This document shows, piece by piece, positions 21,341 to 63,643 of a stretch of DNA of 64,000 nt. The translations under genes and the position numbers were made by a program. The notes beneath the pieces are model-generated. The model was not told the DNA's origin and ran no database searches. It was given only the letters and a program-made list of their open reading frames with translations. Where the stretch lies: the NCBI GenBank assembly GCA_016748015.1, contig JAAOMT010000040.1, forward strand, positions 620,001 to 684,000. Reading direction: 5' to 3'. Numbering within the stretch: position 1 is the stretch's first letter; each line of letters starts with the position of its first letter. This DNA comes from Geosiphon pyriformis uo1 (lineage: Eukaryota; Fungi; Glomeromycota).

Positions 21341-24300
21341 TTAATTCATCTCCTGAGGTTTATCCGTTTGTTTTTGAACATGGAACCAAATAAAAACGCG
21401 ATAAATTAGTGAAATTAAATTCATGCTCAAAATTATTGAGCTCATAGTAAGACTTATTAGAGGAATAATATTATATGCAAAGGTATTTTGACGATAAAAA
21501 ACCTATTTGAAAATAATTATATAAGATATTTAATCTAATTAAGCATTGAAAATTTCATTTAACTAAAACGTACCTGAATTATAAATTGTGGAATATCTTC
21601 AATGAAGATATTAATACCACTACCCCAGAAGATTAAATATTCAACTCTTTTGGATATTGGGGCATTGAAAAGTTCAAAGTTAGCGTATTTCGAATAGAAG
21701 AGATTTAGGACATCAATATCGGCAGCAGAGAGCAGAGTAAATAACGCAGCGGGTTTTGCATGTTTCTGTAACCACAAAACATATTCATCATTTATGGTAA
21801 TCTCTGTAATTACGATGTACGCTGCTAGTCCACTATTAAAAAGAAAAGATATAACTAGGAAAAGAATGCTAATTGATAAAAGTATTAATAAGATTTTTGC
21901 AGATTTTAAGGAATTTACTAAAGATTTGAAAAATTTGAGGATTACCTTGGTAAATATAAATCTCTCACATCTTTTCCATTATTTACAACAAATATGATGT
22001 CGACTACAACATCGACTAGAATCAATGTAATAGAAACAAAGATAAAATTTTTACCCTAATATTGTAAAAGTTATTAAATATTTGTGTGTAATTTTAAATT
22101 TCAAACCAGCAATAATTCTAATATAACTATAAAAAAGTTAAATACCTCGGAATTTTTCTTTCTTCCTATAAAATATAGAGCCATTAATATTATTGCAATA
22201 ACAGCAATTGCAATTAAACTTAATTTATATTCTTCCCAAATATTAGCTAAAGAAATAGAACAATGTATTAGATGATATGTAATTTAATAGAAATCAAGTG
22301 TTGAAGATTATATTATGATCACTCACGTTTAACTTGGAACCCATAATCCTCATCTAAAAAACCTGTATGTGAATAATTGCTAATAGGACTGAGCCATTTA
22401 TTTTTAACCATTGTATCGAGATTATTTGCAATTTCCATAGGATTTCTTTCCAATTTATCGTTTATTGAAGATATTTTGAGTTGTAATATTTCGTAACCTG
22501 CTGATCCTGATTTATCAGTCTTATGATTAATGATTTCGATACGATCCCTTTCGACTGGAATTGTTAAAGCCAATTGATCTTCAAGTGTCTCGAAAAATCC
22601 ACTGCTGTTTCTACTTTCGGTGAAATTCGAAGTTCCATTTGTATTCAGACGCAAAAGTCCAGTCAGGGTAGCTTAAATTAATAAATATTATGTATTTTAG
22701 TTAGACAGCGACTTCCATAATTTTCAAATAGAAAATAAGCAATAAACCTTCTTACCTGCATGAATGCTTTCTCCTGCTTCTAAACAAACGAACGAACGAA
22801 CGAATGAATGAATGAATGAATGAATGAATGAATGAATGAATGAATGAATGAATGAACGAACGAATGAATGAATGAATGAATGAATAATTAATTATTAAAT
22901 TTTAAAATGAATTTCCTAGAAAGCAAAAAAAATAAAAAATGGATATTTACTTGTTTTAAATTGCCAAATATTTCTACGGATTCCCTTAATGGCTTCATTA
23001 TAATTTGCATCTTTTACAAAATTATTATCGACGACTATAAAATAAACTTGATCTGGTTGATTAAATGTGCTTTCTAATAGTTTCACTATGATTGTTTTCT
23101 TATCCGAACCCACACGACAATTTATTCCAGAGATACTTTGTCGTATAATTGGTATAGTATCATTTCGATAAATAGAAATATTGTTGTTATTGTTGTTTGA
23201 TAATGAGATTTCATTAGAATAAGTGATATTTATTTCGCCCAACCCCAATGGAATTATCGTATTACGAGGAGGGTAAGTAATTTCGATCAAAGGATTTTCA
23301 TATCCAGTGTCTATTAAAATAAAAAATTAATAAAAATTATGAAACTCTATAAAAATATCACCATTCAATCTTACCGTTTTTTAAAAAATATGGTAAATTT
23401 TTGGAATATATTGTAATATTGTTATCCCCTATTGTAGCAGTTAAGAAAATATTGTTTGGTAAGATAATCCAAGAAGGTGGCCAACTTTGGAAATTTTTTA
23501 AAATGCTCGAAATGTTCCATGAATCCCTCTGTTTTCCAAATTGGTCACTTAAAGTAAATTGGTAACTTGAAGTATATGTATAGGTTTCAGTAATTTTTCC
23601 CCCATAAGGCAGTGGATATTCCCATAGTACCCGATCTGATTGCCCAGATTCATAAATCGTGTCATATTTTAACACTGCTCCACTTTGAAGAAATGATATT
23701 GTAAAGCCAGATACTTTTTCAATTCCAGATTCCGTTGTATTTTGATATATGGAACAATAATAACCCAAACCATCAATTTGAGCACCACATAGTTTGATCC
23801 ATAAACCCTTTGCGTCATATTGATCGAGTAGAAAATGAGGACCAAAATCAGTTCTTTTTGGCTCCCAAAATGTGACATATACCGAATATTTTGTTATGTT
23901 TATACTAGGAGAATCAATAATGGGAGAATTATTAACAATATATACATATCCAAAGCCTCCTTCAGTTGTGGCAAATAAGGAATTGGAGTCTGGATACGAT
24001 GTTAAATTTCCTTTTAATTCAAGCTGTTTAGGACCAAAAATTGGGTTGATATTTTGATTGAATTCAGTCCTAGATATAAATTGAATGTTGAAGATTATTG
24101 GGATTTATATATTAAATATTTTCAAATCTTATATTTATTAACTTACGGAATATTATAAATAGTCCATTCGATTTTTGTATTATTATTTTTTTTCGAAATA
24201 AGAAATTTATCATTTTGGATATTACTTTTTATCAACCCTGATTCTATACCACTAGATAAATCATTATTCATTATCAATATTAATTTTTATTTTTAAAATT

Positions 24301-24717
24301 AAGCAAATTTTATTTTAAAGAGTTATTTAATAAAAACCTCTGAACTAATGTTCCATTCCATAAGAATATTTTTCCTTGATTTCCATATTCTACAAAAAGA
24401 TAATTAGAGTTAAGAGGATAAATATAAGTTATATTACTCTTGTCTCCATAATTTTTTTCTTCGGCTCGAGATAATTGACCATCAGGCGTGAGCTTAAAGT
24501 ATGTGGAAACCCTGTTATAATTATCAGTACACCCAAACATATTTCCATTTTGCCAAAAAGAAATTATTTTTTTAATGTAATTACATCCCTTTGAATCAAT
24601 TGGGTATACTGTTTCATTAATTAATGAACTCTTAATGACTAAAGTAAAAAAAGATAAAAAAATTGAAATAATTAAAAGGTAATTTTTAAAATAAACGACG
24701 GAGAAAAATTGCTTCAT
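21341..24717 (-). CDS. Large multi-exon membrane protein: signal peptide, beta-rich ectodomain, Ig-like (Big_5/SbsA-like) module, SEA-like juxtamembrane module, multi-TM XK/Xkr-like region (EDIPQ motif); paralog 1
   Basis: Ten exons join in frame via GT-AG from ATG 24717 to TAA 21341-21343 with no internal stops. Motifs TTEGGFGY, YPPRN..INITYSNEISLS..STFNQP..VDNNFVK..IWQFKT, GLLRLN, LVDVVVDIIFV, FIEDIPQFIIQV. Collinear with 56114-59426. Domain names are inferred by eye. Confidence 0.9.
22786..22886. repeat. Intronic (GAAC)/(GAAT)n tetranucleotide microsatellite
   Basis: Long AACG/AATG array next to a 24-bp microexon (KAGESIHA). Confidence 0.95.
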
Positions 24718-25132
24718 TGTTTGAAAGAAGTTATTTTTCTTTACAGAATGATTTTTTTTGAATGGGTTGGTTTTTTTGTTTTACCCCAAATTTTATTCTT
24801 TAAATATTTTATCATCGGATATTTTAAAATCAAATATAGTTAAGATTACCATTATATTATGCAAGATATTTCATAAATATTTATTATTATAGTTTATGAA
24901 AAAATAATTTTGTGGAAACTCAATATTATATCTGAAAATATTATTTTAACTTTCAAGTTAACCAACTAGGATTAGAGTTTATAAAAATTTAAATAAATTT
25001 ATTCAATCAAAAAATAACTGTCAACTTCAATTTTACAGAAGGAATAAAATTTTATCGTTTTTACCTTTGTTATAAAATAAAACCACAATATTTAAATATC
25101 AAGTTTTGAATAAAGATAACTTAGTAATTTCT

Positions 25133-25255
<123 letters not shown>

Positions 25256-28200
25256 CTAACTGATAGCAAAAATTTAAAATATGATTATTTTATTTATTCT
25301 TTAAAGAACAAATTTCTAATTATTGTGTGTTGATTATCAGGATGGGATTATCTATAATATTCAATTAAATGTCGATTATAAGATAAGATTTTAATAGGTT
25401 ATCTCTTTTATAGATAAACTTTATCTTGAATCTATATCCAATTCTTTCAGATACACAATAATTATATGAATGATGCATTCTTGGTAAAAAAAAAATTGAT
25501 ATTTAGATATATTTAATAAATAAAACACAATATTTTTATTTCAAACTAATAATTAATAAGATAAGCTAATCGTGTAGAGTATAATATTAAAACAAAAGAT
25601 ATTTAAATTCAAACAAAATTTTAAAGATTTGTAAATTTAGTTTTTCAAATTATTATATTAGTAATGAAATCATATTTTCGAAATTTAGAATCTTTTGCTT
25701 AAGAGCACTATTTATGAATATTTCGAAACACAATATCTCAATTAGTACAAAAATTCTTATCACTCCTACTGCGACTGATAGATAGATTTATAACTAAAGT
25801 TATGTTTGTTACTGTTAATGATGAAAGAAGAATACCTTTTTACATTATGAGATGTGGTGTTTGATGTGCAAAATAATGATATTTAGTACATTTATCTATT
25901 AAAGTAACACTTAAGTTAGATCTTATACCGGATATTTGTCCTTTCATTGAGTGAAAAGACCATATCATTACTGAAGCTAACGTGTTTAGAATGTAAAAAT
26001 CATTATAATAGTAACATCTGGATTTAACCAGTGTGATAAAGTATTATTGAAATAACTCTTAAAAATAAATCTGCTTAATTTGATCTATTTAATACTTTAT
26101 AAAGTGATATGAAATTGGTTAGAGGAAAGAAACTTATAATAGAAAAATATACAAGAAGACAATAATAAAAACCCCCAAATAGGGTATATTCAATAACCTT
26201 ACATATTTAAAATTTATTTCAATAAAAAAATATTAAACTAACATATAGTTCTATAAAATTTGAATTTGCCGCGTCTTTAATTACAGTTCTCATCTTTTAG
26301 ATTATCATATATTACACTAAAAATGCAAATTTAAATATAAAAATAAAAATAATAATCAATAATATTTACATAATTTTTACATAAATTTTCTAAGAAATGT
26401 ATGATTTTCTTTTTTTTAAAATCAAATTTTCGCAAGATTGAACAATTTAACGTGATTAAACTTTATTTTAAACCTTAAAGTTCCCATTCTGCTACGTTAA
26501 TTGGTAGCCATTATTTTTACGATTAAAAAACCGTGATAGGACCTTGGATATAACACAACAATTCGATGTTTTCTTAAGATCGTGGAAAAAAGTTGAGTCT
26601 TCAAATACTGAAGGTGAAATAGGAATTAGTTCAATACCTCAAAATTCTTTATTTTATTTGAAATAATATTCCTATTCTACGAAAAGATAGTTAGAACTTT
26701 TTTATTTTTTCTATCCTTTGAATAATCAATTGGGTGGGCGGTGTATACCATTGATTGATGCTAGAAATTTCTTGATAATTAAAAAACTTATTTTAAGTTA
26801 AATCAGAATCAGAAATGGAATTTTTTTATTATTCGCTTTTTTAGGTCGGGCTAAATTTTAAATCACCCAATTATTTAAAAAAAAAAGTATAATCTTTTTC
26901 GAAATCGGTAAATAATATAAGAATGATTTAAAATTCATATAGAAAAGCAGCTTTATTTTGTATTAAAAAATAGCAACAAGACAATGAAGGACTTTTAATC
27001 ATAAAGGATATAATTAATTTAAGTTAAATTGCATATTAAAACAAATAGTAAATTACTTAATTATAATTATATATTGTATTGTTGTATTTTTATCTTAATT
27101 AATAATTATAATTGAATTTAATAATTATCATTAATATTATTATTTTAAAAACATTATATTTATTTGAATGTATTAATTATAGCCTAAAAATATGCCAAAA
27201 AAATATTATATATTAAATAATACTTTATTTAAATCCTTAAAAATCAACTAATTTACTTTGTAATCAAATACCTTAACTATATTATCAAAACTATTCTTCA
27301 ATATAGCTGTTTTATTTAATACTTATTTATTATTAGTTTTAATTACACTTATCTTTTTTGTATTAGTCTTAATCTTCTTACAAGTTTTATAATTTTTAGC
27401 TTTACTAATTTGCAATTTTTTTAAAATTTTAAGATCTTAACATACCACTTTTTAAACAAAAAACTCTTAACCTATATTTTATAAAAACTATTATTATTAT
27501 TATCTTTTATATTTTCATCTTTGTATTTAAGTATTAAATTTTTTAATTGTCATATTTAATCGATTTAAAAAAATTTAACAAAATACTTGAGATACTAATA
27601 ATGCAACAAAATAAAATAATCATACTTCAATATTATAGAAATGACTATGTCTTATTCTTTAAGTTTATACCAAACAGTTTTTCTAAATGAAAATAAAAAT
27701 TAAGTAAAATATATATAAAATTTATCATATTTATTAAAAAAATTAATAAACTATAAATATTTTAAAAGCTTTATACTTAATTAAATATAATAATAACATT
27801 TTTTAATAAAAATTAAATTTTAATATTGGGAAAAAATTTTGGTTTTACTTTATTAGAGATTTTAATATAATAATATGATCTTGTATATTAAATTTCTAAT
27901 ATAATAACATGTACTACTTATATTAGATCATAAAAATATTGTATTAATTTAAAATAACTTTTTGTAATAACTTACTGGACTTACTGAGAATTCTTATACA
28001 AAAACTTGTTTCTGAATTATCGTTATAACCAATTAGTTATTTTGTTTTTAAATGTTTTTTGCCATTAATGCGATAGTTTTTGAAAATATTTTCAACACTA
28101 GGATTATGCTAATTTAATATTACTATAGAAATTACTATTCATGCCATTTAATTTTGAGATGATATTGTCATATGGATGTGCTATAACAAAACCAGACAAA

Positions 28201-28261
28201 GTGAACATGTGACATCATTAGTAGTGGCTTGATAAAAATTTTTGAGTCTCGAAGTGCAAAA

Positions 28262-29210
28262 ATGAATGATATTGGTAAAGTCTATTGTTGTTTAGAGGTG
28301 CTCAACATTTTCTTTACAAAGTACTTGTACTTGTTTATTTTTTTATAGATATGTGTGGCTTTTTTACAGCAAATGTGAATGATCTTGAAAATTGGACTCA
28401 TCGCAACATTGTCGATGCATACATGAACAAATATGATTCAAATCCACAAATATTTTTTGGCAAGATTTTATAGGGATTTACAAACAATTCAAAAAAACGC
28501 ATCCACGATGGAATCGGTGAAGCGGAAGGCAGAGGAACTCACGATGGATTTGCAGGAAAGTACATGCTGCAGATATTACTCATGTTTTTAGGGTTTCAAG
28601 TAATGGATAAAGGTGAAGCTTACGAGTGGACACCTGAAAGAGGATATATGTCAGTGAAGACAAGCCACATCGCTTGCGAGGGGTGTGGTGATGAGTTGCG
28701 ACTCGCGTTGCCCCTTGAACCAAACTGTTGTACCTTTTTTTTGGACCTACAGATCATTGTGTAATAATATTGCTATATTTCTACATAGGTTTGGACTCGA
28801 AATTATAAAACACATTATAAGGGTGAGGCCCAAGTCGAACTGATATATGGAGGTGGGAAACCGGAGATTTCATCTATGTAATTTTCTATACATCTTAGGC
28901 CCAGACAAATGCGGAGGGTGCTCTTAAAGCTGGCCAGCTGCTCAAGAACCATATGGAGGCGGTTATATTAAAAAGCACGCAGACTTTGAAACGGACGCGT
29001 GAGAATGATAAGACAGAGAACGCAGACCCTGAAGAGCAAGAAAAATCTCGTCTGCTCAGAGACCAACTTCTTGAGAATCAGCAACTTGTGACAGAACCTC
29101 CATCTGCAAAGCTGGGTTTGGTATTCATATTCTTCCTAGAGCAATCTGAAATATTGTTCTTAACGCTGTCAGCCAGAAAATGTTTATCAGTTGTAAAAAA
29201 CTTTTTCTGA
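28262..29210 (+). pseudogene. Frameshifted intron-containing gene relic of unknown family
   Basis: ATG..GT-AG intron..DMCGFFTANVNDLENWTHRNIVDAYMNKY, frameshift, then FYRDLQTIQKNASTMESVKRKAEEL; further fragments (GEAYEWTPERG, LKRTRENDK). Normal-GC island inside eroded DNA. Confidence 0.5.
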
Positions 29211-31390
29211 AAAATTGCAAATACTAAAAAATTTTTTGCATTAATAATTAGTTTAGAGATATTTTTATCTTTTTAAAAATCAAAAATTATTTAATGTTTG
29301 TGAATTTTTAACACAAATTACATAATTGTTTTGGCATTTTTTGGTTTGAATAACTTGCTAAATAATAAATTTAGTTTGTACATAAAAAAATCAACAAAAA
29401 TTATTGAAAATTTAGACTAAACAAAACTAAAACAAATTTTTAAAATAAGTTTAAAAAATTAATTTTGGCTAAATATTTGAATATTGTTAAGATTATAAAT
29501 GTAATAAAAATTTAAATAAAATGTAAAATTTGTTAAAAAATATTTTATTAAATAATAAATTTTTTTTGAAAACCAAATTTAAAAAATTTAATTACAATAT
29601 TAATAAACTATTTTTAAAATTTTACAATTAAAATCTTTTTGTATTCAAGCTTTTGCGATTAATTAAATCTAAAAACTTATTAAAAATAAATATTCTATTA
29701 AAAATTTAAGAAACCAAAAATTTGGTTATAAAAAGTAATTTCTATGTATTATTTAATTTATGTTTAAAAAGCTTTATTAATTTGTAAAAAAGTTTTAAAT
29801 TCTTGAAAACTCTTAGTTTTTTTAAGTTATATAGATAAAAAAAAATGCTTATAAATACAAAACCAATAGTATTAATTAACCTAACAAAAAAATTTTGTTA
29901 AAAATTTTATTAAATTAAATCTTGTAATTTGTAAATCAATAATATTTTCCAAAAAATAACTTTTTTATTTTAAAAAGTACATTAATTCAAATTTTTATTT
30001 TTGTTGTTAGTTTTATAATTAAAAATTCTTTGTAAAAAATTATAATTTAATGAAATTAGCTGGAAAGAAGTTATAAAAAATTTATTAAGTTTTTTAGTCA
30101 TATTTATAATATTAAAGTTAAAAAAATTATAATTTATTTTAGTTTAATAGAAAAATAAAGAAAACCAACAAGTTTTTTGGTTATTAAATTGATTTTAAGC
30201 TTATTATTTTAACTCGTAAAGTTAAATTTAAGATAAATATTATATTTTTTTGTTAATACTTTTATAAATAATATTATTTAGATTGGCAAAAATTAAACCA
30301 CTATACAAATAATTTAAACATTATAAGCAATTTTTTTTGAATTAATAATATAGTTATATACAATAATAAAACAATAAATATTTTTATTAATTACAAGATT
30401 AAAAATGTTTTTTTTAAAAAATTAGTAAATTGTTTATTTTTGTTACTAAGTTTAAAAAAGCACACTAGTAACTTGTTAATAAAAAGTTTGTGTATTTTTA
30501 GTTTAAATAAAAACTCAGGCTAATATAATTTTTTTTTAATAAAGTATTTAAGAAAACAATATTAAATAACCAATTTTGCTATTTGTTTTTAGTTGTTTTA
30601 CATTTTATTATTAGTTATTATACTTAATTAAATTTTATATTTAAAAATATTTGCAATAAATAAAACAGATTAATTTATAAGATTGTGACAATTCTGGAAT
30701 TTTTAAATGTTAAAAGCATACTAAAAAGACTTTTTGAATATAAATTTCTAAATTTTCAAATTTATAAATAGAGATTCTATTATTTATTGTGTTATTTTAT
30801 CAAATTTTTAAGTAATTTTATTAATTAAAGTGGTAAAAATTTTTGAATATACAATTTTTTATTTGTTAATGTTTTTATATATGTTTTTTACTTTTATATT
30901 AAAATATTAGTATTTAATATAATTGGAAAAATAATCTATTTTAAGGCTATTTAGTTTTTAAAAAGGTTTAAAATAACTTTTACTTGCCAATTACGAATAA
31001 AAAAAAGTGTTTTATTAAGAAAAAACATTATTGTATGACAATAAAAATAATCAAAGCATAATTTAACTTAATAAGTGAATTGAATTAATAAAGATTTAAT
31101 GTGTAAGATGAGTTTCATAAATATCTCAGTTGCTATTTTTTTCAAAAGGTAACAAAAGAATCTGAAATTAAAGAAATAGTCAGTATTATTAATAAAAAAT
31201 AATACACTAGTATAATTTTATTTTTCATATATTAATATTTTTAGAATTCAATATCAAATATCAATTGGATTTTTCAATAAATGTTTATTTAATATACTTT
31301 AAAAAAACAAAAAATTATAAAAATCAAGAAAAGAAAAGAGAAAAAAAGAAAATAAAGATTTAATATTATTGTATTAATTTTTGTTTTAAA
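29210..31390. other. GC-eroded AT-rich tract (probable decayed TE)
   Basis: Composition like 17200-21320; no ORFs in the track. Confidence 0.55.
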
Positions 31391-32987
31391 TGAATTTGAT
31401 ACGAGTGTGAATTCTTGTCTGAACCAAATTTTCTACAGTTTTTGAAGAGTCTCACTATATACTTTTAAAAAAGGATCAATGATCAAGTTAGTGATCACAT
31501 CAATGACTAATTCTAATATAATGACATCTAATACATGTGACTAACTATAGCTAAATAATAAATAAATTAAAAATTAAAAGTTTTAACCCTAACAATATGA
31601 TAAATCTTTTCTCTAAAGAAATAAATTTATACAGTCCTAGTAGAAATTAATAGCTAAAACCTTTTTAAACACAAACCCAAGGAATATTATATTTGAAATA
31701 CGTTAATATAAATGGTATAATATACATAAAACTAATAAATAGTATAATCTCCTGCTTGAATATGGGCAAGCATCCTACGAAAATTTGTAAATACCTCCTT
31801 CTTCTCCTCTGGAAGTTTGCTCATTCTTTTACTAGCCCAATAAAATCCTCTTGAAACTTAATCAATTTTGCAAAGTATAGCAAAATAACGCTGATGGGAG
31901 CAAAGTGGAACACCAGCTAGTTTTTTAATTTCGGTTGTATTGTAGTGACGATTGCATCAAAAGTACTTTACAGCTTTACCGTTTTTAATTTTACAGGGTT
32001 GAGATGCATTAGGTAAGTGAAAATAGATAAAAAAGATAACGGCATGAATAAATGGGAGATTTTGTGATATCAGGGTTGACCAAAAAATAACATTTACACA
32101 TTGGCCTTTTTTAGAAGGAGGTTAATAATGCGACAAATTTTTCTAATGGTGTTGCCATCATTATTTTCTGCCAAAATTGCAATACTAACATTTAATACTA
32201 ATAAATTGTGTTATTTTACTCGAGTTAATTTTTTTTAAAACATTAAATGCTTGTAAATATTTACACTCTAAGATGAAAATTAATTTTTTTTCTCAAATTT
32301 TTAACCCATTTAAAATTTTCAATTCGAAAATGAAAGCAATTTTTTGTTCAGATAAATGTAGTTCTAGGCTCACAAACATTGCTGTGAATTTTGGAAAATG
32401 AGGGGATATCTTCAATATCCTTTATAAAAAGTAAAAAAAAAAACTTTAGGCCATTTATCTAATAGCACCACCCAAATAATCGGATTAGGTTTAATTTCTA
32501 GAAAATATTTTACTTTTTTACTTAACAAAAAATGATAATAAAGTATCCTTACTTTAGGAATATGTGAAAAAATGTGAAAAGGTTGTAAAGTTATCGAGGC
32601 AACTCTCCAATCTAATCTTGTTCATCGTACGAGTTGCCAACTTGATTGAATTTCACTAATTTTAAGAATTTAGCAAAAAAAAAAATTTTCGGGCTTTTCT
32701 AAAATATTATTAGAACTAATATATTTCTCTCTATAAAAATACTAATTTTTTTTTTAAGAAATCTCTTGTCAATTGGGTCAATGATTCATATCGAAGTATA
32801 TCATAAATCTAAAATAGAAATTAAAATTATTTGTCTAATAAAACCGTCGCAGGTTTGTTTTATTTTGAATCTAAAAATAATAAAAACATTTGATCAAAAT
32901 ACAGGGTATAAAGATTTTCTTTGGTTTAAAATCATATAAAATATTATCGCTTCTTCACAGTTTCTAAAAATTTTGAAAATTTTAAAT

Positions 32988-34519
32988 TTAAATTCTACCA
33001 ATAGGATAATAATTTTCGCAATTTCCAAATGTCACTCCAAAATAAGGACCGAAATGAGCTCTTGTTCCTTTACCATCAGTGTCTAAATTGCATCCCTACA
33101 AAAGGAAGATAAATAAATAAAACTATTTTTATATTTACTTAATAGCAATCTTAAATAATAAATTAAATTAGTTTTCTATATAAAAGCCTTTTTATAATAA
33201 AGACCAAACTTACAGGATTTTCGACATATTTTTTTTTATCATTTAGGTAAAATCCTTGACATTCATAGATAATTTCATAACCTTCACGAAGAAGTCTGGA
33301 AGAATCAGGATCATCGCAATTACAATTCCTATCTTGAATCCAATACTCAGTCCCAGGGTGCATATATGATTTACCATCGATTGATTTTTTTGGAAAATGG
33401 GGAAAATAGTCATTAGTATGTGTTATCCTGTATGCTTTAAGATTAACCATTCGCTGGAATTGGCCTGCAAACTGAGAATCTCCCGAACGTGGAGAGCCAA
33501 AAGTGATAATAGTAATATCAAGATTTTCATGAAATCTCAGCTCACTTGACATTAACAAGCCGTATACTTGGGCATAAACTAATATTATAATTAAAATATA
33601 TAATTAAGACCCCAGCTTTAAAAATTTTGTTTTAAAATAAATGAATTAAAATATTTATAATTCCTTACATCCACCAATACCATGTCCAGTTAAAACAATA
33701 TGAATTGGATTATTCGCTTCTGTTCCATTTTTTAATATGTTTACAGCGGCTCGTATTCTTCCGTCAAATGATTGGAAACAATCCTCTGGCCATGATTTCC
33801 ACCAATGTGAATCAACTTTGAATTTATCCAAATTAGGGTGCAATATTCCTAGTTTATACTTGGTTTTTTCCATTTGGTTTCTAATCATTTCTGGCCCTAT
33901 TCATTAAGAAAATATGAGAATTTTTTTAAAATTAGAGACTTTTCAAGTGTAAAAATAAAAACTTTTGAATATATTTAGTTAAAAATGCCTGCAATTATTT
34001 TAGAGACTTTCCTCTAAAAATTCCAATAATTCTTCCCAAATTAATTTCAGTATAGACTCTGCCTAATCGAATCATTTTATATGTGAAAGGAATAAGCGAT
34101 TTGACTCTAGTATGAAAAAAAGTTTCAAAAAAACAAATTTTTTACTTAAAAGTTATCTTACCTATAAAACCTCTACCAATTATATATTCATGTTCTCTAT
34201 TACAATAGAGTTCATTTGTCACATATGCCATGCTTTTAAAAAGTTGAAGAATCCCGTAATCTTTTACCAGCGTTTTAGGTAATGCGACTTTTCTTTCGAA
34301 TCCACCACTACTTATTAAGAGTAGTTCTTCTTGATTATTATGTTGAAAGATTTTTTCTCGGCGCTTAAAGTTTGATTTTAGTGGGAAAAAGCTTTCATAA
34401 AATTTGGTTGCGTTCATTTTTTTTGATAGTGGAGCAAATTTTTCTGTGTGATCTTTGAGAAATGAAGAGCAAATGATTAGAAGAGAAAAGAAAAAAAATT
34501 TCAATATATTTTGTAGCAT
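32988..34519 (-). CDS. Secreted class-3 lipase-fold protein lacking the catalytic Ser (GHGIGG); intron 2 donor is GA
   Basis: Signal-like N-terminus (MLQNILKFFFFSLLIICSS); AY..LYC; IIGIFRG; VLTGHGIGG (33670-33687); ITFGSPRSGD; YRITHTNDYFPHFP; YMHPGTEYWI; final exon AHFGPYFGVTFGNC; stop at 32988. Confidence 0.85.
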
Positions 34520-35719
34520 GATTTTTTTCAAAAAGACCAAGTCTTTGTTTAAGAGGAATTTAAAAAACTTCAAAGTAGTACTTTCTATAATGAGGATTTA
34601 ATGAAACTAGTACGGAAAATCATTTTTCGATAACCAAAAACTGAAAATAATTACATAGTATTGACTATTTATAAAATATGAGAATAACCCAAACACTAAT
34701 TGTTTATCTTCAAAATAAATAGCTATTAACATTTGTAAAAAAAAATTTATTGTAAAGCAAAAAGTTAATAATTATAAATAAATATTAGTTTAAAAAATTT
34801 ATTTATTTTTTTATTTATTTTAATATTTAATGTTATTTAAACCACTATTATAATTTGATATATTATCAATTAGTAAAAAAATTAAGAAAATATTTTGGTT
34901 CTTTAAAATTTCTTTAAACATTATTATATATTATAATTTTAACAAAGTTTTCAATTTCAATTTTTATTTATTCATTTATTAAAATTAAAAAAAAGTACAT
35001 AAATTTAATAAAAAAAAACTAAAAAAACTAAAAATATTGTAATTTAAAATGAAAAAATCTTCTGTTAATGGCTTTAAAACTGTTTAACTTATTAAAAAAG
35101 ATAAATTTATACTGTTTTTTAGTTAAAAAATTCTTATTTTTTATATTATTTATCATCAAAAAATTTATTAATAATAATATAAATATTAAAAATTTATTTT
35201 AAAGAACTGCTATATTATATTATAAATTTTATTGTTTAACTTTAAATTAAATTAAATTAAATTATTACAAAAAATTATTAGAGTTTTATAAGATTTATAA
35301 AGTAATTAGGTTTAATTAAAACAATATTAATTTGATAAATTTGTAGTTTAATTTTTTTTTATATTTAAATTATAAAAATATATCTGATTATTTAAGTATT
35401 AAAAATTTAATTTTATTATATTACTATTAATAAAAATATATTAAATAACAATTATTTAATTATAGCATTTGTGTTATTTTTTCTTAACAATTATAAACTA
35501 AATTCTCAACTTTCAAAAAATTATTAACTGTTATTTCATGAAATTGATTACATTAATTGAATTACTTACTTATTCAATTTATTTTTTGTTTAAATTTTAC
35601 TTAATTATTTCTATTGTCATATATTTATTATTCTTATTGCTATTTATTAATATGTTACTTTAATCTGTAACAATATTATTTAATTTAAACCAAAACAAAA
35701 TAAACTTTGATATCTTGCA

Positions 35720-36135
35720 TTATTTATTTATTTTTTATTTGTGATAGTGGTTCAATTACTACCTAACACAATACATACATCAGACATACTCATGCTTTTG
35801 CTATACGTAACCAGCCACCCAAGCTACCCTTTTTAACTAAAATAACTTGGCTCACGCTATCAGGTAAACACAGATCAACGAGCAAGGAACCAAAAACCAG
35901 GTAATTGACATCACACAGACCAAAATAGATTAACAGCTCTTTGGCAAACCATTCCTACGTACATCGATCAGCCCAATTTCTCATACGCCGACTTTAACTT
36001 TGCATTAGGAACCCAAATCATGGACAAGTCCCACAATGTTGGCAGAAGCCAACTTGGAAGGCGCGAAGATTCCCATAGATTCGTTATACTAGGTTTTAAA
36101 CACTATATCCTTGGCAACCGTTGTATTATAAGTAA
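35720..36135 (-). mobile_element. Probable 5'-truncated non-LTR (LINE) retrotransposon 3' end with decayed poly(A) tail
   Basis: GC-richer island. Minus strand reads LYNTTVAKDIVFKT*YNESMGIF..ANIVGLVHDL / IWVPNAKLKSAYEKLG, resembling from memory C-termini of Glomeromycotina LINE ORF2. A-rich tail follows on the minus strand (35720-35740). Confidence 0.5.
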
Positions 36136-36774
36136 ACAACAATTTAAATAAAAAACAACCAAATCTCGAATGTCTCAATGATGCAATGTAATAATAAATT
36201 TTTACTTTAAACAAACAAATTATTGTTTTTTGTAATAAAATTGTTCAATATTACATATCAAAAATATAATTTGTGTTTTTTACTATATTGCAAAATTATA
36301 AAACCAAAATAAACAAGATAGATAAAAAAATTTATTAATTTATTAAGTTATTAAATACTAAAATAGCTTGTTAAATAAGCTATGACATTATAATAATTTT
36401 ATTAATAAAATAAATATTAACTGATTTGTAATCTGAAACAAGAGCTTTTCATAGTTATAATTTTTTAATAATAAAATATAGTTTTGTTAATATTAAAGAT
36501 TTATGATACAAAATTATATTCATTTTGGTTGATTCAAATATATTTTATAAGTAATTTTTATGGAACTTAGTACCTTATTGTGATCGAATTTTGGTTTAAT
36601 ATTTATATAATATTATTATTATAAATTTATTTATTGTGGATAATAAAGCAAAAATTTACAAAATTCATAAACTAAATTGCTTGCAAAATTACTTTTTTTG
36701 GTCAGACAAAAATTTTATTTAACTTTATTAAATAGTTGTTGTTTTTTAATTTAATATTAATTTCTTAAATCACT

Positions 36775-37757
36775 AAGAGGCGGGCAAATACAAATCCACA
36801 ATTCAATCGTGCACTTTGTTATCAAAATGGATGGGGAACGACAAACGATGTGGAAAAAGCATTTGAACTCTATTTAAAAGCAGCAGAGGCCGGAGATATA
36901 ATTGCACAAAAAAATCTTGTATGGTGTTATCTAAATGGAAGGGAAACGACAAAAAATGAGGAGAAAGCATTTGAACTTTATTCAAAAGCAGGAGATGCGG
37001 GAAATAAAAATTCACAATATAACCTTGGATGGTGCTATCAAAATGGATGGGGAACGATAAAAAACGTCATGAAAGCATTGGAGCTCTATTTAAAAGCAGA
37101 GGCAAACAACTTAAGTTATAATAGTAATACTTTTGTTTAACTTCACTTGGGACGGGTCATTTAGCAATTCCAAAAGCGAGGTTTAAAATTTCCGGATAAT
37201 TCAAAGGAAGAATTTTTAGATTCTGAAGCTTTCTTTAACCAGCTTTCAGATGAATGCAAGTGTCTTAAATGTGGAAACTTGGGTATAATCATTAGTGGAT
37301 CTCCTATATGTCTATTTGGGATTTTGACCAAAGTAATGAAAGTATATTTAACCCCGGCTTGCCGAAATGTCCAGAATGCTATCACACATTAAAAGATCCA
37401 CTTTGGTGTACAGATTGTGAATCATCACGACTTTTAAAGATTTGGCGAAGATGGAATAGTGGAAATGAGAATATTGATCAGTATATAGGATATACACAAC
37501 AAATTTCTGAAAGTTGTAGGGGATGCCTGGAATGGATTTCTCCCGATGAGATCTTATCTCTAGATCAGGTAGGAATTGGAGGATTTAGCGTTGTTAAAGA
37601 AGGCATATGGGAGAGGGGCAAAATTTTATTTTTGGATGAGAAAAATCAAAATTATGAGCGAATTGAGGTTACGAGAGTCGTTTTTAAACATCTTAAAAAT
37701 AGCCAAAAGATGGAAAAGATCCATACAAATGAGGTATTTTCTTTTAAGAAATCTATG

Positions 37758-37793
<36 letters not shown>

Positions 37794-38560
37794 CTTTTTC
37801 TTTTCTAACACTAGAAAACGCGTTGAAATAGTTCATTGCGTTAAATGTGCCTCTTAAAGATATATTCTTGAATGCTATGGAATGATAAAAGATCTTACAA
37901 CCGATGAAGTTGTTATGATTTTACCATTTGCAGAACACGGGGATCTCAGAGCTTTTCTCAAGAACAACAAAAACATTTTTACTTGGAATAATTTTTCTTC
38001 GTATTCTTTTTCAAATCGCCAGTGGCCTAAGGTTTATACATGAATCAGGACTGCATGGGGACTTAAATCTTGGAAATATACTTGTTTTAAAATCAAACCC
38101 CTTAAAAGTTGTCATTTCTGATCTTGGATTCTGTCATCCTACCAATTACTCTCCAGAGTTCGAGAAAATTTTTGGTATTGTTCAATACCTAGCGCCCAAA
38201 ATTTGTAGCTTATCACCTCATACGAGATATAGCGATGTTTACAGTTTTGCTATAATTACCTGGGAAATTATTTCAGGAGAAAGACCTTGGAAAGATGTTA
38301 AAAAGCAATCTGACGTGATTGGTGGAAGACGCCCCATAATCGAAAAGCATACATCTCAGTGTATTCAGAAAATGATTAAAAAAAATGGGATTTTAATCTA
38401 GCTTGGCGTGATAGTGCAAAAAAACTTCAAGAGAAAGTTATTGCTGCTCGCGAGAATTGTAACTTAGAGGGGCTTGTCCGTGAAAAAAGATCTAATTGCG
38501 AAGAGGCACATGGTTATAAACATGATATAACAAGATACACCTTTTTCAGATCTGGAATCT
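36775..38560 (+). pseudogene. Sel1-like repeats + Cys-rich linker + tyrosine-kinase-like (TKL) kinase, frameshifted
   Basis: Three SLRs (KAFELYLKAAEAG, SQYNLGWCYQNGWG); CKCLKC/CPEC..WCTDC; WNSGNENID..LEWIS; GIGGFSVV; ECYGM..ILPFAEHGDLR; HGDLNLGNILV; SDLG; SDVYSFAIITWE. Frameshifts near 37320 and 37995, stops near 37830; 5' end lost into eroded DNA. Confidence 0.9.
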
Positions 38561-39920
38561 TCCATTATCTCAAGTTTCTAGTTCACAGATTCAGTAAACA
38601 CTTTAAATTTGGTTTAATAATGATTTTAATTGTTTTTATTGACATTTAACCATAAAATGGTTTGAAGCAGATGAAAATTTGAATGAAGAGACGGTTCTTT
38701 GTAATCATTTCTTTGGTTATAGTGATTTAAAAAATGGATACTTTATAAATGTTATTTCGGACCATCACTGAAGTTATTTTTTAACTTTTATTCCTCCAAG
38801 AGAATTCAACTACAATTCCTTTCATAAGTGCTAGTGTGCCTAAAGATTTAAGGTAGCCTTTACTTACTGTTTTAAGCATTAGATGTTGACGCTTCAATAT
38901 TAAATAATCGTCATTGTTCATAACATTATTATCATTATTTTATAAAAAGCGAAATTTTTATATTTTTAAACAGTAGAATCATAAGCAATAGATTCGTTTG
39001 CGTTTTTATATATAGATAACGGGTGGTTTTAATATATCAAATTTAAAAAACTTTCTAAGGTCCTTGGAAATCTTTATAAACTCTCTAAAGTATCAATTTA
39101 TTTTTTATACTTTTGATAAATATAGTAAATATTAAAAGAATCAGTAGAAAGAAATCAATTGAGAGAGAATATATAATGTAGTTTTTCACTAAATGTAATA
39201 ATATCTAAATTCACAATTGATTATGCAAAGCTGCTTTTAAATTGAAACTTTCCCAATTTATTTAGCTTAATATGGCATTAATAATTAAATAATTGTTTCC
39301 AAGCATATTTGTTTATCTGAATAAAATAAGGTCATCTACATTGTAAACTCGAATAAATCCTTTTTAGGAAGCCTGGATCATTTGAAATTTTTCATTCGTG
39401 TCTATATTTGATACTTTGAAAATGACTTTATATGGTATATAGAGCTATTTCTTCCTGAAATTTTCTTATTTCGAAAGAAAGTTTTTGCTGCTAAATTCCT
39501 TTTATTAAAGGGGGAATTCTTGTATTTGGGGTAATTAAAAAGAGGTTTGAAATATAATATTATTAGCCTCGGTTGTGTGTAAAAAACATGATATTTCTGT
39601 ATATACTGAGTAGAATGGTCGGGTTTAATTAAAATGCTTTCATATGTTAAAAACTTCTTTTTTTAAAAATATAAATTATTTGAAAGGAATCTCTTATGAT
39701 TTTTTGATTTATTAAAATTGTTTTCTAACTAGGGCTAATTTTTTTGTTCTCTGATATAATAAATGGGTTAAATAATATTCTAATAAAAAACTTTTTTTGG
39801 AAACTTTTGTTATTCAATGGAATTAAACCTCGTTTTTTCAAGTTTATAATCAAAAAAGTAAATTTAATGACCATTTATATTCAAGATATTAATTTCAAAA
39901 ACGATTACTTTAATTTTGGA

Positions 39921-40021
39921 ATTTAATTCATTCATTCATTCATTTCCTGTCGTTTAACTAGTGACCAACTGGTTTGAACATGGAACCAAATCACGGTGTA
40001 ATAAAATCGAGTAATTAAATT
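39921..40021 (-). pseudogene. Orphan 3' terminal fragment of a third copy of the EDIPQ membrane-protein family
   Basis: Reverse complement is near-identical to 59337-59436 (NLITRFYYTVIWFHVQTSWSLVKRQEMNE). Confidence 0.85.
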
Positions 40022-40031
40022 ATTATAATAA

Positions 40032-40063
<32 letters not shown>

Positions 40064-41150
40064 GAAAGAGCACTATTATTTATAACAAAATTAGAATTAA
40101 TTGTATTTATTGGTAATAATAAAACAAAATTTGTGTTTTAAAAGACATTAGGAGAATTTTTTTAGAATCTTAAAAAAGTTTGTTGCAATAATTTTAAATA
40201 GGGGCAATATTGTTTTTTGGTTATTTTAGCTTTTTAACTATTTAAAAAACAGTTTTAGAGATAATTAAAAAGAATAATAGCTTTACTTCTAGTTTGTTGT
40301 TAAAGATCATAGAACTTTTTGTAATAATAGTAATTATGCTAAGACTATTCTTAATGTATTATTTTAATAATACTTTTTCTAATTGTTTTTATAACTGAAA
40401 AGACTTTTAAATTGTAGCTGTTTTTGCTATTATAAAAAAATATGAATTGCTTTTTTTATTTTTTGCTTTGGTTATGGTCATAAAAATTATAAAAGAAAAA
40501 AGTTTTTGCTATTAATAATTATTTTTTTTATTTATATAAATTAATTTTGTTAATATTATTTAATTTTTCATTTATTTTAATATATATTTTATAATTTTAT
40601 TAAAAAACTACTATAATTTAAATAAACTTATTTAATGATTTTGCAAAAGAAATTTTTTTTACATTTTATTAATAATAAGCGATTTTACAATAATAATAAT
40701 AATAATAATTTTTATAAATCAGATTATTGTAGATTTGGTTGTAATTGTTTTAAATAAAATGTTCAATAAGATTTTAATTACGACTAAACAAATTTTAAAA
40801 AAGTTTTAATCAATTATTCAAAATAATATAATTAGTGATAATCAAGATTTTTTTTTTTATTTTAAATCAGAATCAGTTTATTTTAATCAAAAAAACTAAC
40901 TCATTTCAAGATTAAAATGAAAATTAAAGATTTGATTTTAACTTATAAGTAATGATCTTTATTGAATAATTTTTTGATTAATTTCAAAAAAAAAATAGCT
41001 TTAAAAATATTCAAATCCTATGCTAGCTTTTCAGACAGAAAATATAATTTATTGTTCATACAAAATGTAAGAATCATTGATTTTTACCCCAGCAAATCTT
41101 TATATATTATCAAATAGCTTATAAATTAGTAAAAGTATATATTATATAAT

Positions 41151-41230
41151 TTAAATTTCCCACGATATCAATATCTTTTAAATTTCCCACGATATCAATA
41201 TCTCTTAATTTCCCACGATATCAATATCTT
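41151..41230 (+). repeat. 3 x ~27-bp tandem repeat (AATTTCCCACGATATCAATATCT) in the MIF promoter
   Basis: Three copies directly upstream of TATAAAAA (41259-41266). Confidence 0.9.
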
Positions 41231-41258
41231 TGTTTATGTCACAAGTTCAGAATTTCCA

Positions 41259-41266
41259 TATAAAAA
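41259..41266 (+). promoter_or_regulatory. Putative TATA box of the MIF gene
   Basis: TATAAAAA about 65 bp upstream of the ATG. Confidence 0.45.
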
Positions 41267-41327
41267 CACAGGATCTCGCACCACGAATTGTGTTCGAATT
41301 AATATTTAATTCTACAATTAGAATACA

Positions 41328-55050: not shown

Positions 55051-56113
55051 CTCAGTTTAAAACTTCCCTTTTTGTAATTTTCTTATTAAAATTTGCTTTA
55101 AGGTTTGTTCAATATAAATTAGTAAAAAAATTATTTTTATTTTGACTTTTTTTTTCAATGTTATAAATAGCTATTTCCACTTCATAATAAGTGAAAGTTT
55201 CTTATGTTACAGTTTGAGTTAAATATGTAAAAAAAACTTTAATTTCTAATAGAAAAACAAAAAAATCTTTTTTTACTCTTAAACACAAAAGAATAAATGA
55301 AAATAATTATTAATTTTAAGATATTATTGAATGATTATACTTTCATATACAGACCAAATTTACATAAGAATAATAAGCATTCATTTTTATAAATAGAATA
55401 ATATTATAAAATTTACTAAAGCACTCTATTATATAAATGGTACATATTTTTTTACTAAACTGTGGAGTAAAACTTTATTTGTAAGAAATATATCTAACTA
55501 AATATGTAACCAATTATATTAGCATTGAAATTTTCTCGAATAAGAACTACCCTTAATAATTCAAAATAAGTTGAAAACTTGAAAGAAAAAATGGTTACCA
55601 AGTAACAAACTTTAAATAATTTTTTCAAACCCCTTATTTATAAAATCCAAATCAATAATTAATTTCTATTGAAAAGCTAAATATTTTCCAAAGATAACGA
55701 ATAATAATAGTTACCCTCCTTTTTCGGTATTTTCTTGTCTCATTTTCACCTCTCTCAAATATGGTTATTTGAATAGAAATGAGCTTTTTAGTAAAGATTT
55801 TCAAGAACAAAATGGTGCATTTCCTAATATATACAGGCTGTGAACGTTTAATTATGGAAATACCATTGTGTATGTTTTCTTTGTTAGCCTAATTAAAAAT
55901 TTTCGTCAGGTGGCCTTGGTTCTATGGTGATTTTTTTCATGAGAACTGTAACTAAAAATAGCTAAATTTAATTTATAGTTGTGTTTGAATTTTTGATTTT
56001 TCTGAAAATAAAAGATTTAAGAGATTTAAAATTATGGAAAACAGAAAAAACCAACCAAATAACCCCATTTAAAAAATCGATTGCAAAGAAAAATAAATAA
56101 AATTTTCTTGAAA

Positions 56114-59100
56114 ATGAGACAATTTTTCTCAGCTACTTATTTTAATAATTACCTCTTGATTATCTTCACATACCTAGGTTATTTTGTTTCAATTAGTAAG
56201 AGTTCTTCATTACCATTAATGAATCAAACGTTATATTTAATCGATTTGGAGGAATTTAATAAGACACTTGATATACCCATGATGCAGCAAGATAAAACAA
56301 TCATACTTCAATACTATGGAGATAATCATGTCTCATTCCTTAATTTTACACGAAACAACACAGTTTCTCTAAATGAAGATAAAAATTATGGAAACGACAG
56401 TGAAATATATAGGATTTATCCTCTTACCTCTAATTATCTTTTAGTTCAATATTTAGGTGAAAAGTTGGGCAAATTATTTTCATGGAATGGAACATTAATT
56501 CAAAGGTTTTTTTTAATAATATAAGATAAATCTGCTTAATTTTTAAAAAAAAAATTATATTGACAATGTATACTCTTTATCCAGTGATATAAATATAGTT
56601 GAAGGGATAATAAACCAATTTCAATGGTCTCTTTTAACAAGAAATATCCAAGAAGATAAAAATTTCCTTTGGATTAATGAATTATATAATACCACGGAAA
56701 TAGAATGGACTATTTTTAATGCACCGTAAGTTATCACACAGTATATATATATGGATTTCAATATAATAATCTCACATATTTAATTTTTCTTTAGAACTTT
56801 ACTCCAAGGAAAATATCGAACCAACACATGGTCCTAAAAAGCTTAAATTGAAAGAGAATTCGATGAGTTCTTCTTCAAGATCCTTTACCACAATTGATGG
56901 GGGCTTTGGATTAGCATATATTTTTGAATTTCATTCCAGTATAAACATGAAAAGTCATTCAATATATGTCACATTTTGGGAGCCAGAAACAGCTGATTTT
57001 GGTCCTCATTTTCTGCTTTATCAAAATGATGGAAATTATGACAGGATGGTGCTTACCGGATGTAGTGCTCAAATGAATGGTGCTGTGGGTTATTATTGTC
57101 AGCTACACGGATATGAAATTGAAAACGATCAACAAATCCAAATATCATTTCTTCGAAGTGGAGCAGTGATAAAATATGACATGATATATAATAAAAGGGT
57201 ATATGATAATAATATTACACTGCCTTATGGTGGATCATTAACTGGAACCCCTATAAAAGAAGACAACGTACTAGTTTTAAAACTATATGATCAAAATGGA
57301 GTCCAGAATGACTCATGGAATATTTCGAATTGGAATTGGGAAAGTGATCTTACGGAAGCTGGTTTTACTGTCTTACCAAACAATACTTTCTGGGCTGCTA
57401 CATTAGGAAAAGACAATGTTACAGTATACACTAAGAATCTACCATATTTCTCAATACAAGGTTAGTAAGATTGAATACAATGGAGAAATTGGTGATGTTT
57501 TTGGCATATTCTCATGGGTTGTTAATATTTTATTTATATAGACACTGGGTATGAAAATTTTTTTATCGAAACTACTTCCCCTTCTCGCGGTAGCCAGATT
57601 CAATTGGGTTTAAAACAAATAAACATTACTTATTTCAACAAGATCTCATTATCAAATAATAATATTTCTATTTATCAAATAAATGATACTGAACCAATTC
57701 TGAGGCAAAGTGTGCCTGCAAAGAATTGTCGTGTGGAACCGGATCATAAAACTATTACAGTGGATGTTTTTGAAAGTACATTTAATCAACCTGATCAAGA
57801 ATATTTTATTGTCATCGATAATAATTTTGTGAAAGATTCACAGTATAATGAAGCCATTATTGGAATACGTGGAAACATTTGGCGTTTTAAAACAAGTATT
57901 TGGTTTTTTTTTTTGGTTTTTTTCTCTGAAAAATTTATTTTAAAAAAGATTAATTATTCATTCCTTCCGTTAAATGCTTTTAGAGGCACAAAAAAGCGTT
58001 CACGCAGGTGAGAAGTTACATTGGTTTTTTTCTATTAAATTTCAAAATATCATTATCTAATTAAAATATATCATGGTTTTCGATGATTTTAAGCTACCCT
58101 AATTGGACTCTTGCGTCTGAATAGAGATGGAACTACAAATTTCACCAAATGTAAAAACGAACATGAATTTTTCAGAATGCTTCAAGATCAATTATCTTTT
58201 ACAATTCCAGTTGAAAGGAATCATATCAGAATTATTGACCATAAGACTGATAAATCAAAATCGGAATCAACAAACCAGGAAATATTACGACTTCAGATCT
58301 CTTCAACAAGTGATCGTAGAAATCCAACAGAAATCGCAAATGATCTCGATATAATGATCAAGAGTAAATGGTTTAATCCCATTAGCATTCATTCACATAC
58401 GTGTTTTTTAGATGAAACTTTTGGTTTCCAAGTTAAACGTGAATAAGCATAATTTAATTTTCAACATTGAATTTCTATCAACTTACACATCATCTAATAC
58501 TTTTTTCTTTAGATGATCCTTGGGAAGAAAACAAATTTAACTTAATTGGAATTGCTATTATCGTAATAATAATAATTGCTCTATATTTAATAGGAAAAAA
58601 GAAAAATCCAAAGGTATCGTATTTTTTTGCGACTCCATTTTAGCAATTTAGTTTTAAATTTTAATAATTGATAAATTTTATTCATTTAGGGTAATAGTTT
58701 TGCAATTGTTTCCGTTATATTGATTTTGGTCGATATTATATTAGATATCACATTCATTATGAAATATGGAAAAGATGTGGAATTTTTATATTTACCAAGG
58801 TAGTTAATTTTTAACTTTTTAATTTGTTGAGGAAAAAAAAAAGCAATTATAATTAATTATCATATTTTTTTTGATCAGTATTGCTTTTCTAGCTATACCT
58901 TTTCTTTTTAATAGTGGACTAGCAGCATATATCATAATCATAGAAATTATCACCAATGATGAATATGTTTTATGGTTTCGGCAATATTCAAAACTTGCTT
59001 CTTTATTTACTTTACTCTCTGCTGCTGATATCGACGCTCTAAATCTCTTATACTCAAAGTATGGCAACTTTGGTCTTTTTCATGCTCCAATTTCTAAAAG

Positions 59101-59426
59101 AGTAGAAGATGTAATCTTCTGGGGTAGTACCATCAATTTCTTTATTGAGGATATTCCACAATTTATAATTCAGGTTTGTTTACAAAGATGTGGACTTTTT
59201 AAAAAGTTTTATGTTTGATTGAATCAAATATCTTATTATTATTATTATCAATTAGGTGATTTACCATCAAAACACCTTCCCCTATGACATTATTCCTTTA
59301 ATGAGTCTTATTATGAGCTCAATAATCTTGACAATTAATTTAATTACTCGATTTTATTACATCTTGATTTGGTTCAATGTTCAAACCAGTTGTTCATCAG
59401 TTAAACGCCAGGAAACGAATGAATAA
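56114..59426 (+). CDS. Large multi-exon membrane protein with ectodomain + Ig-like + SEA-like modules and XK/Xkr-like EDIPQ membrane region; paralog 2
   Basis: Same exon structure as 21341-24717; TIDGGFG, STFNQPDQEYFIVIDNNFVKD, GLLRLN, LVDIILDITF, FIEDIPQFIIQVIY, IIPLMSLIMSS; TAA at 59424-59426. Confidence 0.9.
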
Positions 59427-63151: not shown

Positions 63152-63643
63152 ATGCTTAGAAAACCAAATTGCTTCTTTTTGATCGTCTTTACCGTAATCT
63201 TAACTTTCAATTACCTTGTCTTCTCCACTCCAGTTTCAACCTCTCGCTCGCTCTTTAAACGTGTGGGTACTGGTAATGGTAATGGTAACGGAAATATAGG
63301 CGACAATTATGGGGTCAATATGCAGGGAAATAATCTGGATAACTACAACAACAATCCATCTGGATTGCTTGCTGCACAAGCAAAGGGGTATTATATCCCA
63401 GCATCAAGCCCAACTACGGAGTATTATGTCCCAGCATCAAGCCCAGCTACGGAGTATTATGTCCAAGAATCAACTCCAACTACGATCGAAAGCTCAACTC
63501 CTTATCCAACTGTCACTATACTTCCGAATAAGCCAAAAAGCAAGGGTAAAAAGAAATCAACAAAGAAGGGCAAAAAGAAGCCAAAGAAGCCAAAGAAAAA
63601 AGTTAAAAGTACAAAGAAAACAGTGCAATATATATATTATTAA
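63152..63643 (+). CDS. Secreted protein with Kex2-like site, GN-rich segment, 3 x YY(V/I)PASSPTTE-like repeats and a Lys-rich basic tail (effector/cell-wall candidate)
   Basis: ATG ORF of 163 aa; signal peptide; LFKR; 33-bp repeats 63389-63484; KKPKKPKKK tail; (TA)n/TATAAA upstream. Confidence 0.85.
   Translation: MLRKPNCFFLIVFTVILTFNYLVFSTPVSTSRSLFKRVGTGNGNGNGNIGDNYGVNMQGNNLDNYNNNPSGLLAAQAKGYYIPASSPTTEYYVPASSPATEYYVQESTPTTIESSTPYPTVTILPNKPKSKGKKKSTKKGKKKPKKPKKKVKSTKKTVQYIYY

Follow-up and report, generated by a model that had tools for sequence, protein, structure and literature searches.

Candidate surface receptors of the fungus Geosiphon pyriformis that probably carry a single N-terminal repeat of the XK/Xkr fold

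What might a fungal protein do with a large receptor-like ectodomain and half of an XK/Xkr-type membrane protein? The question is raised by two related genes, paralog 1 and paralog 2, in a 64,000-nucleotide stretch of Geosiphon pyriformis uo1 (Glomeromycota; GenBank assembly GCA_016748015.1, contig JAAOMT010000040.1, positions 620,001 to 684,000), hereafter the window. The parts of both predicted proteins have the same order, as follows: a signal, a beta-propeller-like domain, a Big_5-type immunoglobulin (Ig)-like domain, a SEA domain, an extra transmembrane (TM) helix, TM0, and a module of four TM helices. We propose that these are surface receptors with a lone N-terminal repeat (ND) of the Xkr fold, and that regulated lipid scrambling may be their output; judging from sequences, models, and analogy, we put the probability of this reading at about 0.45. 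The homology of the module to the Xkr ND, taken by itself, is very probable.

The searches used single exons or full-length database homologs as queries, and both genes were spliced by script. The module of homolog P0007 was modelled by AlphaFold with 49 sequences; the model has a predicted local distance difference test score (pLDDT) of 92 and consists of five long helices plus short re-entrant helices. In a wide structural search of 48,161 PDB chains, it ranked XKR9 first (Z 12.0), XKR4 second (Z 11.8), and XKR8 fourth (Z 9.8), with aligned ranges of 4-190 in XKR9, 108-365 in XKR4, and 7-195 in XKR8; the XKR4 range contains the acidic triad D125/D129/E313. A second structural look gave Z 12.3 for XKR8 and 7.9 for the next non-Xkr fold. 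Over the three Xkr structures, Z is 9.8-12.3 and the root mean square deviation is 3.6-4.4 Å over 152-173 residues, a match to the N-terminal repeat fold, that is, four TM helices with a re-entrant hairpin. The alignment to the Xkr structures leaves out TM0 (helix 3-31 of the model). Foldseek, a check proposed in an earlier note on this DNA, placed XKR9 in its first row, with a probability of 0.63 versus 0.11 or less for the others, though with an E of 2.2.

Since structure scores alone are ambiguous for a helical bundle, independent support was taken from Pfam matches limited to the first half of the XK-related family PF09815. This was the only recurrent Pfam family, with weak matches in 6 of 49 and 8 of 30 members, fungal and non-fungal, and every printed range falls within profile positions 1-179 of 337. 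TMEM26 (PF09772), which the earlier note had named as a possible better match, had no profile match in any member scanned (E 0.1 or 0.05), a comparison of Pfam profiles only, without a TMEM26 structure. The note's central claim, a single XK repeat fused to a large ectodomain, is thus borne out by the structural and profile matches and can be narrowed to the ND. By model and sequence, the module would be one N-terminal XK repeat outside Xkr membership proper: the window proteins end 13-20 aa after TM4, short of the two repeats and eight TM helices of Xkr proteins, the profile matches break off near position 175 of 337, and the profile scores lie below the family cut-off.

The motifs that had been picked out in the window proteins are present in the order given, namely LVDVVVDIIF or LVDIILDITF, FLAIPFLFN (paralog 2), FIEDIPQFIIQ, and IIPLISLTMSS or IIPLMSLIMSS. 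They provide a D-x3-D in TM1 and an E-x2-P-Q in TM3 (D685, D689, E797, and P800 of paralog 1). Of 48 diverse homologs, 35 (73%) have an acidic residue at each of the three positions; the TM3 proline is found in 47 of 49 and the glutamine in 46 of 49. A nine-sequence set drawn from fungi and distant eukaryotes shows no variation at the D, D, and E positions. In Xkr4, D125, D129, and E313 (D26, D30, and E141 of XKR8) sit with P316 in the ND vestibule (PMC12334663). Losses of triad residues are scattered over the tree, with 7-8 changes per site; P0100 and P0151 are examples of homologs that lack the triad. Co-evolution of the triad residues was considered and set aside: joint loss gave Fisher p values of 4e-6 to 5e-4, but p was 0.5 (three independent pairs) after relatedness was taken into account.

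For the ectodomain, the beta-rich N-terminus, the Ig-like and SEA-like modules, and the extra TM helix of the earlier note are supported by homolog models, profile matches, and hydropathy. The ESM Atlas model of homolog P0033 resembles propeller-type proteins (TM-score 0.56-0.69; 0.64 for a cluster of seven-bladed propellers), with no specific family. The N-terminal ~360 aa had no significant Pfam or PDB sequence match, and single window exons gave nothing meaningful against Pfam. The PF13205 (Big_5/SbsA Ig-like) profile matches 11 of 51 homologs (best E 2.8e-6), paralog 2's own Ig exon has no PF13205 match, and in the PDB the Ig-like domain meets a YcnJ CopC-like chain (E 0.011). The SEA-region domain, folded alone, has a pLDDT of 91 and a ferredoxin-like order of strands and helices. 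All but one of its nine best PDB matches are extracellular domains of the SEA or SEA-like kind; the top matches are led by SorCS2, TROP2, and CELSR1, with TMPRSS6, the MUC16 SEA domain, and IA-2 also among them (Z 6.4-8.6). An Atlas search with this domain points to SEA, ALE2_N, and KIAA0319. The autoproteolytic GSVVV motif is absent from a 59-sequence consensus of the SEA domain. In the Ambispora homolog P0009, a Kre9/KNH Ig-like domain is found at the C-terminal end (aa 908-990), possibly through a merged gene model, and in homolog P0075 the SEA domain is duplicated (aa 411-656). An outside location of the paralog 1 ectodomain is consistent with its N-glycosylation sequons because all 18 precede the first TM helix and none follows. 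It is likely that TM0 puts the XK module in the native Xkr orientation.

The positions of the parts are given in Table 1. The earlier note had described two intact paralogs and treated 21341-59426 as one unit. Its coordinates for both genes are right, and splicing gives ten exons for each; an open frame (858 aa) results only for paralog 1, and unrelated genes sit between the two. The intron-2 acceptor and a conserved G-P-K codon block are 34 nt apart in paralog 1 and in a further family locus, L045, versus 35 nt in paralog 2, and alignment with seven other paralogs puts the extra base at 56797-56805. Because both the spacing and the alignment show one surplus base, paralog 2 is frameshifted as assembled. 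Read as two parts with an X at the break, it has 865 aa and every module. Its membrane module has a ratio of nonsynonymous to synonymous substitution rates (dN/dS) of 0.29 against paralog 1, and any break is therefore recent. In-frame rescue through another acceptor was judged unlikely: the sole candidate, 56868, has a weak context and costs 24 conserved codons.

Table 1. Parts of the two paralogs and related fragments, numbered from the first letter of the window.
Feature	Position	Strand	Remarks
Paralog 1	21341-24717	-	Intact; 858 aa; 10 exons; all introns GT-AG; single terminal stop
Paralog 1 exons	24717-24338, 24251-24147, 24069-23375, 23310-22951, 22779-22756, 22671-22327, 22246-22146, 22055-21946, 21868-21574, 21502-21341	-	
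Predicted signal peptide or signal anchor, paralog 1	24619-24717	-	aa 1-33; hydropathy peak aa 15-33; from hydropathy only
N-terminal beta-propeller-like domain, paralog 1	23379-24618	-	aa ~34-392; most variable part of the family
Putative Big_5/SbsA-type Ig-like domain, paralog 1	22951-23310	-	aa ~394-514
Putative SEA-fold domain, paralog 1	22327-22671	-	aa ~522-636
Predicted extra TM helix (TM0), paralog 1	22164-22223	-	Hydropathy 2.96; basic inside stretch directly after
Probable XK/Xkr ND module, paralog 1	21380-22055	-	aa ~671-846; TM1, TM2, re-entrant helices, TM3, TM4
Acidic residues, paralog 1	D685 22013-22011, D689 22001-21999 (TM1); E797 21600-21598 (TM3)	-	P800 also in TM3
TTCA/TTCG tetranucleotide microsatellite, intron 4 of paralog 1	22780-22885	-	Absent from paralog 2
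Paralog 2	56114-59426	+	10-exon layout as in paralog 1; GT-AG introns; frameshifted as assembled
Paralog 2 exons	56114-56505, 56585-56725, 56795-57460, 57542-57895, 57984-58007, 58094-58438, 58513-58613, 58690-58799, 58879-59173, 59256-59426	+	
Paralog 2 frameshift	56797-56837	+	One extra base at ~56797-56810 (start of exon 3); stop 56835-56837, codon 192
Isolated first-exon fragment of the family	27553-27675	+	tblastn E 5e-9; 59% to paralog 2 aa 41-81
Isolated last-exon fragment of the family	39935-40009	-	tblastn E 3.5e-6; 76% to paralog 2 aa 841-865

The two window genes belong to a large family. The membrane exon has 61 matches in the G. pyriformis genome, which is AT-rich and assembled as 128 Mb in 792 contigs; profile searches gave 42 strong main-exon loci and 46 SEA-exon matches, and at 41 of about 45 SEA loci a module match lies just downstream on the same strand. 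The family numbers about 40 loci. Four of the 17 closest loci (L037, L041, L042, and L045) have no stop or frame change over the matched exons, and the remainder have stops, frame changes, or missing 5′ exons within the fetched stretch. The family is under birth-and-death evolution. Relatives are found across the Glomeromycota. The closest database proteins carry the name of G. pyriformis itself, and the named relatives as a whole belong to Geosiphon, Ambispora, Funneliformis, Acaulospora, Entrophospora, Gigaspora, Dentiscutata, and Cetraspora. A representative search gave 291 clusters at 50% identity, in which most long matches keep the order of N-terminal domain, Ig, SEA, and membrane module.

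The domains differ in their rates of change, as had been supposed for a diversifying family. The two paralogs share 31-58% of their residues in the N-terminal domain, 62-70% in Ig and SEA, and 68-82% in the membrane module. Pooled over close paralogs as pairwise NG86 values against paralog 1, where the pairs are not independent and broken copies are included, dN/dS is highest in the propeller (0.68), intermediate in Ig (0.53) and SEA (0.52), and lowest in the XK module (0.30). The module is under purifying selection and the propeller changes fast, with dN/dS of 0.75-0.84 for the most closely related pairs. As dN/dS does not exceed 1 in any domain, the rate of the propeller may also reflect relaxed constraint.

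TM0 and the ND module also occur in non-fungal eukaryotic contigs of 46-55% GC, with E of 1e-35 to 1e-55 to the fungal profile; none of the contigs has a human look. There, the ectodomains (at loci among L031-L035 and L056-L059) consist of EGF repeats, of a legume lectin domain with EGF, or of leucine-rich repeat (LRR)-like exons with EGF, and one complete non-fungal frame of 786 aa has LRR and ephrin-receptor-like repeats before the module. Run SRR28428054 contains at least three paralogs of such non-fungal TM plus half-XK proteins; SRR29457737 and Ga0215283 are further data sets with non-fungal carriers of the module. Given these varied ectodomains in other eukaryotes, the architecture is therefore a modular receptor plan, not a fungal oddity. 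The same occurrence weakens the link to dependence on host lipids drawn in the earlier note, and no result here connects the module with lipid uptake.

How do these proteins compare with known systems? With the XK/Xkr scramblases (XKR4, 9BOJ; XKR8, 7DCE and 8XEJ; XKR9, 7P14 and 7P16; CED-8; PF09815), they share the N-terminal repeat fold, the likely topology, the D-x3-D of TM1, and the E-x2-P-Q of TM3. In contrast to these, they have one repeat and no C-terminal repeat, an extra TM helix and a 640-aa ectodomain in front, and Asp instead of Ser after the TM3 Glu; they are multi-copy, and the short C-terminal tails of both window paralogs have no caspase-type DxxD site. The XKR8-basigin complex may be a partial analogue, with an XK fold beside an Ig-containing ectodomain on a single TM helix. 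However, basigin is a chaperone that accompanies a complete two-repeat Xkr as a subunit of its own, whereas the fungal ectodomain, TM helix, and ND form one chain. A membrane-proximal SEA-fold domain is shared with receptors of the SorCS, KIAA0319, TROP2, and MUC16 type. SorCS-type sorting receptors have the order propeller, Ig-like, SEA-like, and TM. The fungal propeller, of ~360 aa, has no VPS10 match, and the fungal Ig domain is of the Big_5 type, whereas all these known receptors are single-pass and have no XK module. The ESM Atlas clusters labelled "SbsA Ig-like domain-containing protein" (81-232 members, Mucoromycota) are the same family, with a module TM-score of 0.93-0.94. Neither these clusters nor the Glomeromycota hypothetical proteins of GenBank have the XK module in their annotation, which goes no further than hypothetical or Ig-like.

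A mechanism can be proposed from what is known of Xkr4. Xkr proteins are built of two four-TM repeats related by a two-fold axis, and in inactive Xkr4 TM2 is kept in check by the C-terminal repeat; once this restraint is lifted, the ND vestibule can take up water and thin the bilayer (PMC12334663). In simulations, the bilayer thins at the ND vestibule, whereas the inter-repeat cavity, which is not the lipid pathway, shows no thinning; purified monomeric XKR4 scrambles lipid (PMC12334663). In the fungal proteins, the variable propeller would bind an outside ligand, which may be another cell surface, a glycan, or a protein, and Ig and SEA would form a stalk. TM0 would restore the Xkr topology, so that the acidic vestibule would open outward beneath the SEA domain. 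Because the lone ND lacks the second-repeat brake seen in Xkr4, we suggest that the restraint most likely comes from TM0 together with the stalk, or from a homodimer partner. Once a ligand binds or the receptors cluster, local thinning of the membrane and lipid scrambling would be released at a contact site. It is speculation to assign the proteins a role such as self/non-self recognition, hyphal fusion, or symbiont engulfment.

Several points weigh against a scrambling receptor built on an Xkr ND, some bearing on the homology and others on the output. The module has 8-14% identity to Xkr proteins, for helical bundles the search tool rates a Z near 12 as ambiguous, a Z of 10.3 is reached by an unrelated protein of four helices, and the Foldseek E is non-significant. 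The printed PF09815 scores, 17-22.5 bits (best E 3.1e-5), are below the gathering cut-off of 24.8 bits. Profile and single-sequence searches of PDB sequences matched no Xkr chain, and no Xkr cluster is among those listed by the Atlas shape search. The probable equivalence of the fungal triad to that of Xkr comes from motif spacing and helix position, not from residue alignment, and 13 of 48 homologs are without one to three of the acidic residues. We know of no isolated ND that scrambles. Mutations of the Xkr4 triad lower scrambling in liposomes just 1.3-2.5-fold, and for several human XK proteins no substrate has been shown (PMC9333335). The low identity, the sub-threshold profile scores, the Foldseek E, and the helical-bundle caveat would all fit a convergent origin, in which an unrelated four-helix membrane bundle carries acidic motifs by chance. 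That origin is very improbable and largely refuted, since three different Xkr structures fall within the top four of 48,161 chains, independent profile matches from fungal and non-fungal members alike cover one and the same half of the family profile, the motifs agree in order and spacing, and no scanned member has a Pfam match to TMEM26.

If the homology is accepted, the output still has to be weighed. Nearly as likely as regulated scrambling is a receptor or adhesion protein whose XK-derived module would serve signalling or scaffolding without scrambling lipid, for example as a vestibule that binds cations, as a conformational switch, or as a docking site for cytosolic partners. About a quarter of the homologs have lost part of the triad, in scattered fashion, yet keep the fold and the P-Q kink, and many have long, low-complexity cytosolic tails; the order of the ectodomain resembles that of SorCS-type sorting receptors, SorCS2 being the top SEA match. 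In Xkr4, K+ and Ca2+ bind in the vestibule of the ND (PMC12334663). However, the triad is kept in most of the diverse homologs and throughout the nine-sequence set, and the tails of the window proteins have just ~13-20 aa, which leaves the membrane module as the sole evident output. It is also conceivable that the proteins are obligate homo- or heterodimers, in which ligand binding brings two NDs together as a pseudo-symmetric, Xkr-like unit of eight TM helices. A lone repeat would expose its inter-repeat face, and membrane-proximal SEA-like domains often mediate dimer contacts. This we regard as improbable: Xkr4 works as a monomer, its inter-repeat cavity is not the lipid path, and TM0 is an alternative cover for the exposed face. 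The dimerisation suggested in the earlier note thus lacks support as a requirement, the thinning vestibule of Xkr4 being held by its ND (PMC12334663).

Some neighbours of the paralogs may be mentioned. A Sel1-repeat exon followed by protein-kinase exons, at 36769-38646 (+), is typical of the expanded kinase families of Glomeromycota and may be broken. Two class 3 lipase genes lie on opposite strands, at 33166-33603 (-) and 48843-49352 (+); this pattern, taken with the paralogs and fragments, hints that the region was duplicated in inverted orientation long ago. There are also a MIF/tautomerase gene at 41439-41780 (+), an F-box-like gene at 52518-53762 (+), and two secreted-looking, low-complexity repeat proteins, one rich in Pro, Ser, and Gly at 3505-4758 (+), without Pfam match, and one rich in Gly and Asn at 63131-63640 (+). 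Kelch-like exons at 7400-9200 (-), followed by a Thr/Pro stalk and a TM helix, make up a further surface protein with a propeller and a single membrane pass. The idea that MLKL-like genes are generally linked to the family was rejected: none of the four MLKL_N loci found in the genome adjoins a family locus, the nearest being ~13 kb from a last-exon match.

The XK fold is known, and has been described from nematode to human (PMC12334663). The literature searched contained no description of this family or of XK modules in these fungi, nor of a one-repeat form joined to receptor ectodomains or of its multiplication in Glomeromycota; the present family extends the fold to fungi and other eukaryotes. 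The lipid path of Xkr proteins is disputed, as to both dimer or monomer and ND vestibule or inter-repeat cavity, and a natural ND-only family with the triad under purifying selection makes the sufficiency of the ND directly testable. A broader proposal, somewhat doubtful at present, is that of a widespread eukaryotic receptor class in which interchangeable ectodomains directly gate a single-repeat XK scramblase, the ND being a minimal, possibly ancestral, Xkr unit; if this were true, lipid scrambling would be a ligand-triggered receptor output. For the symbiotic fungi themselves, whose receptors for partner and self recognition are poorly known, the finding is a large, unannotated, and fast-evolving family of probable surface receptors.

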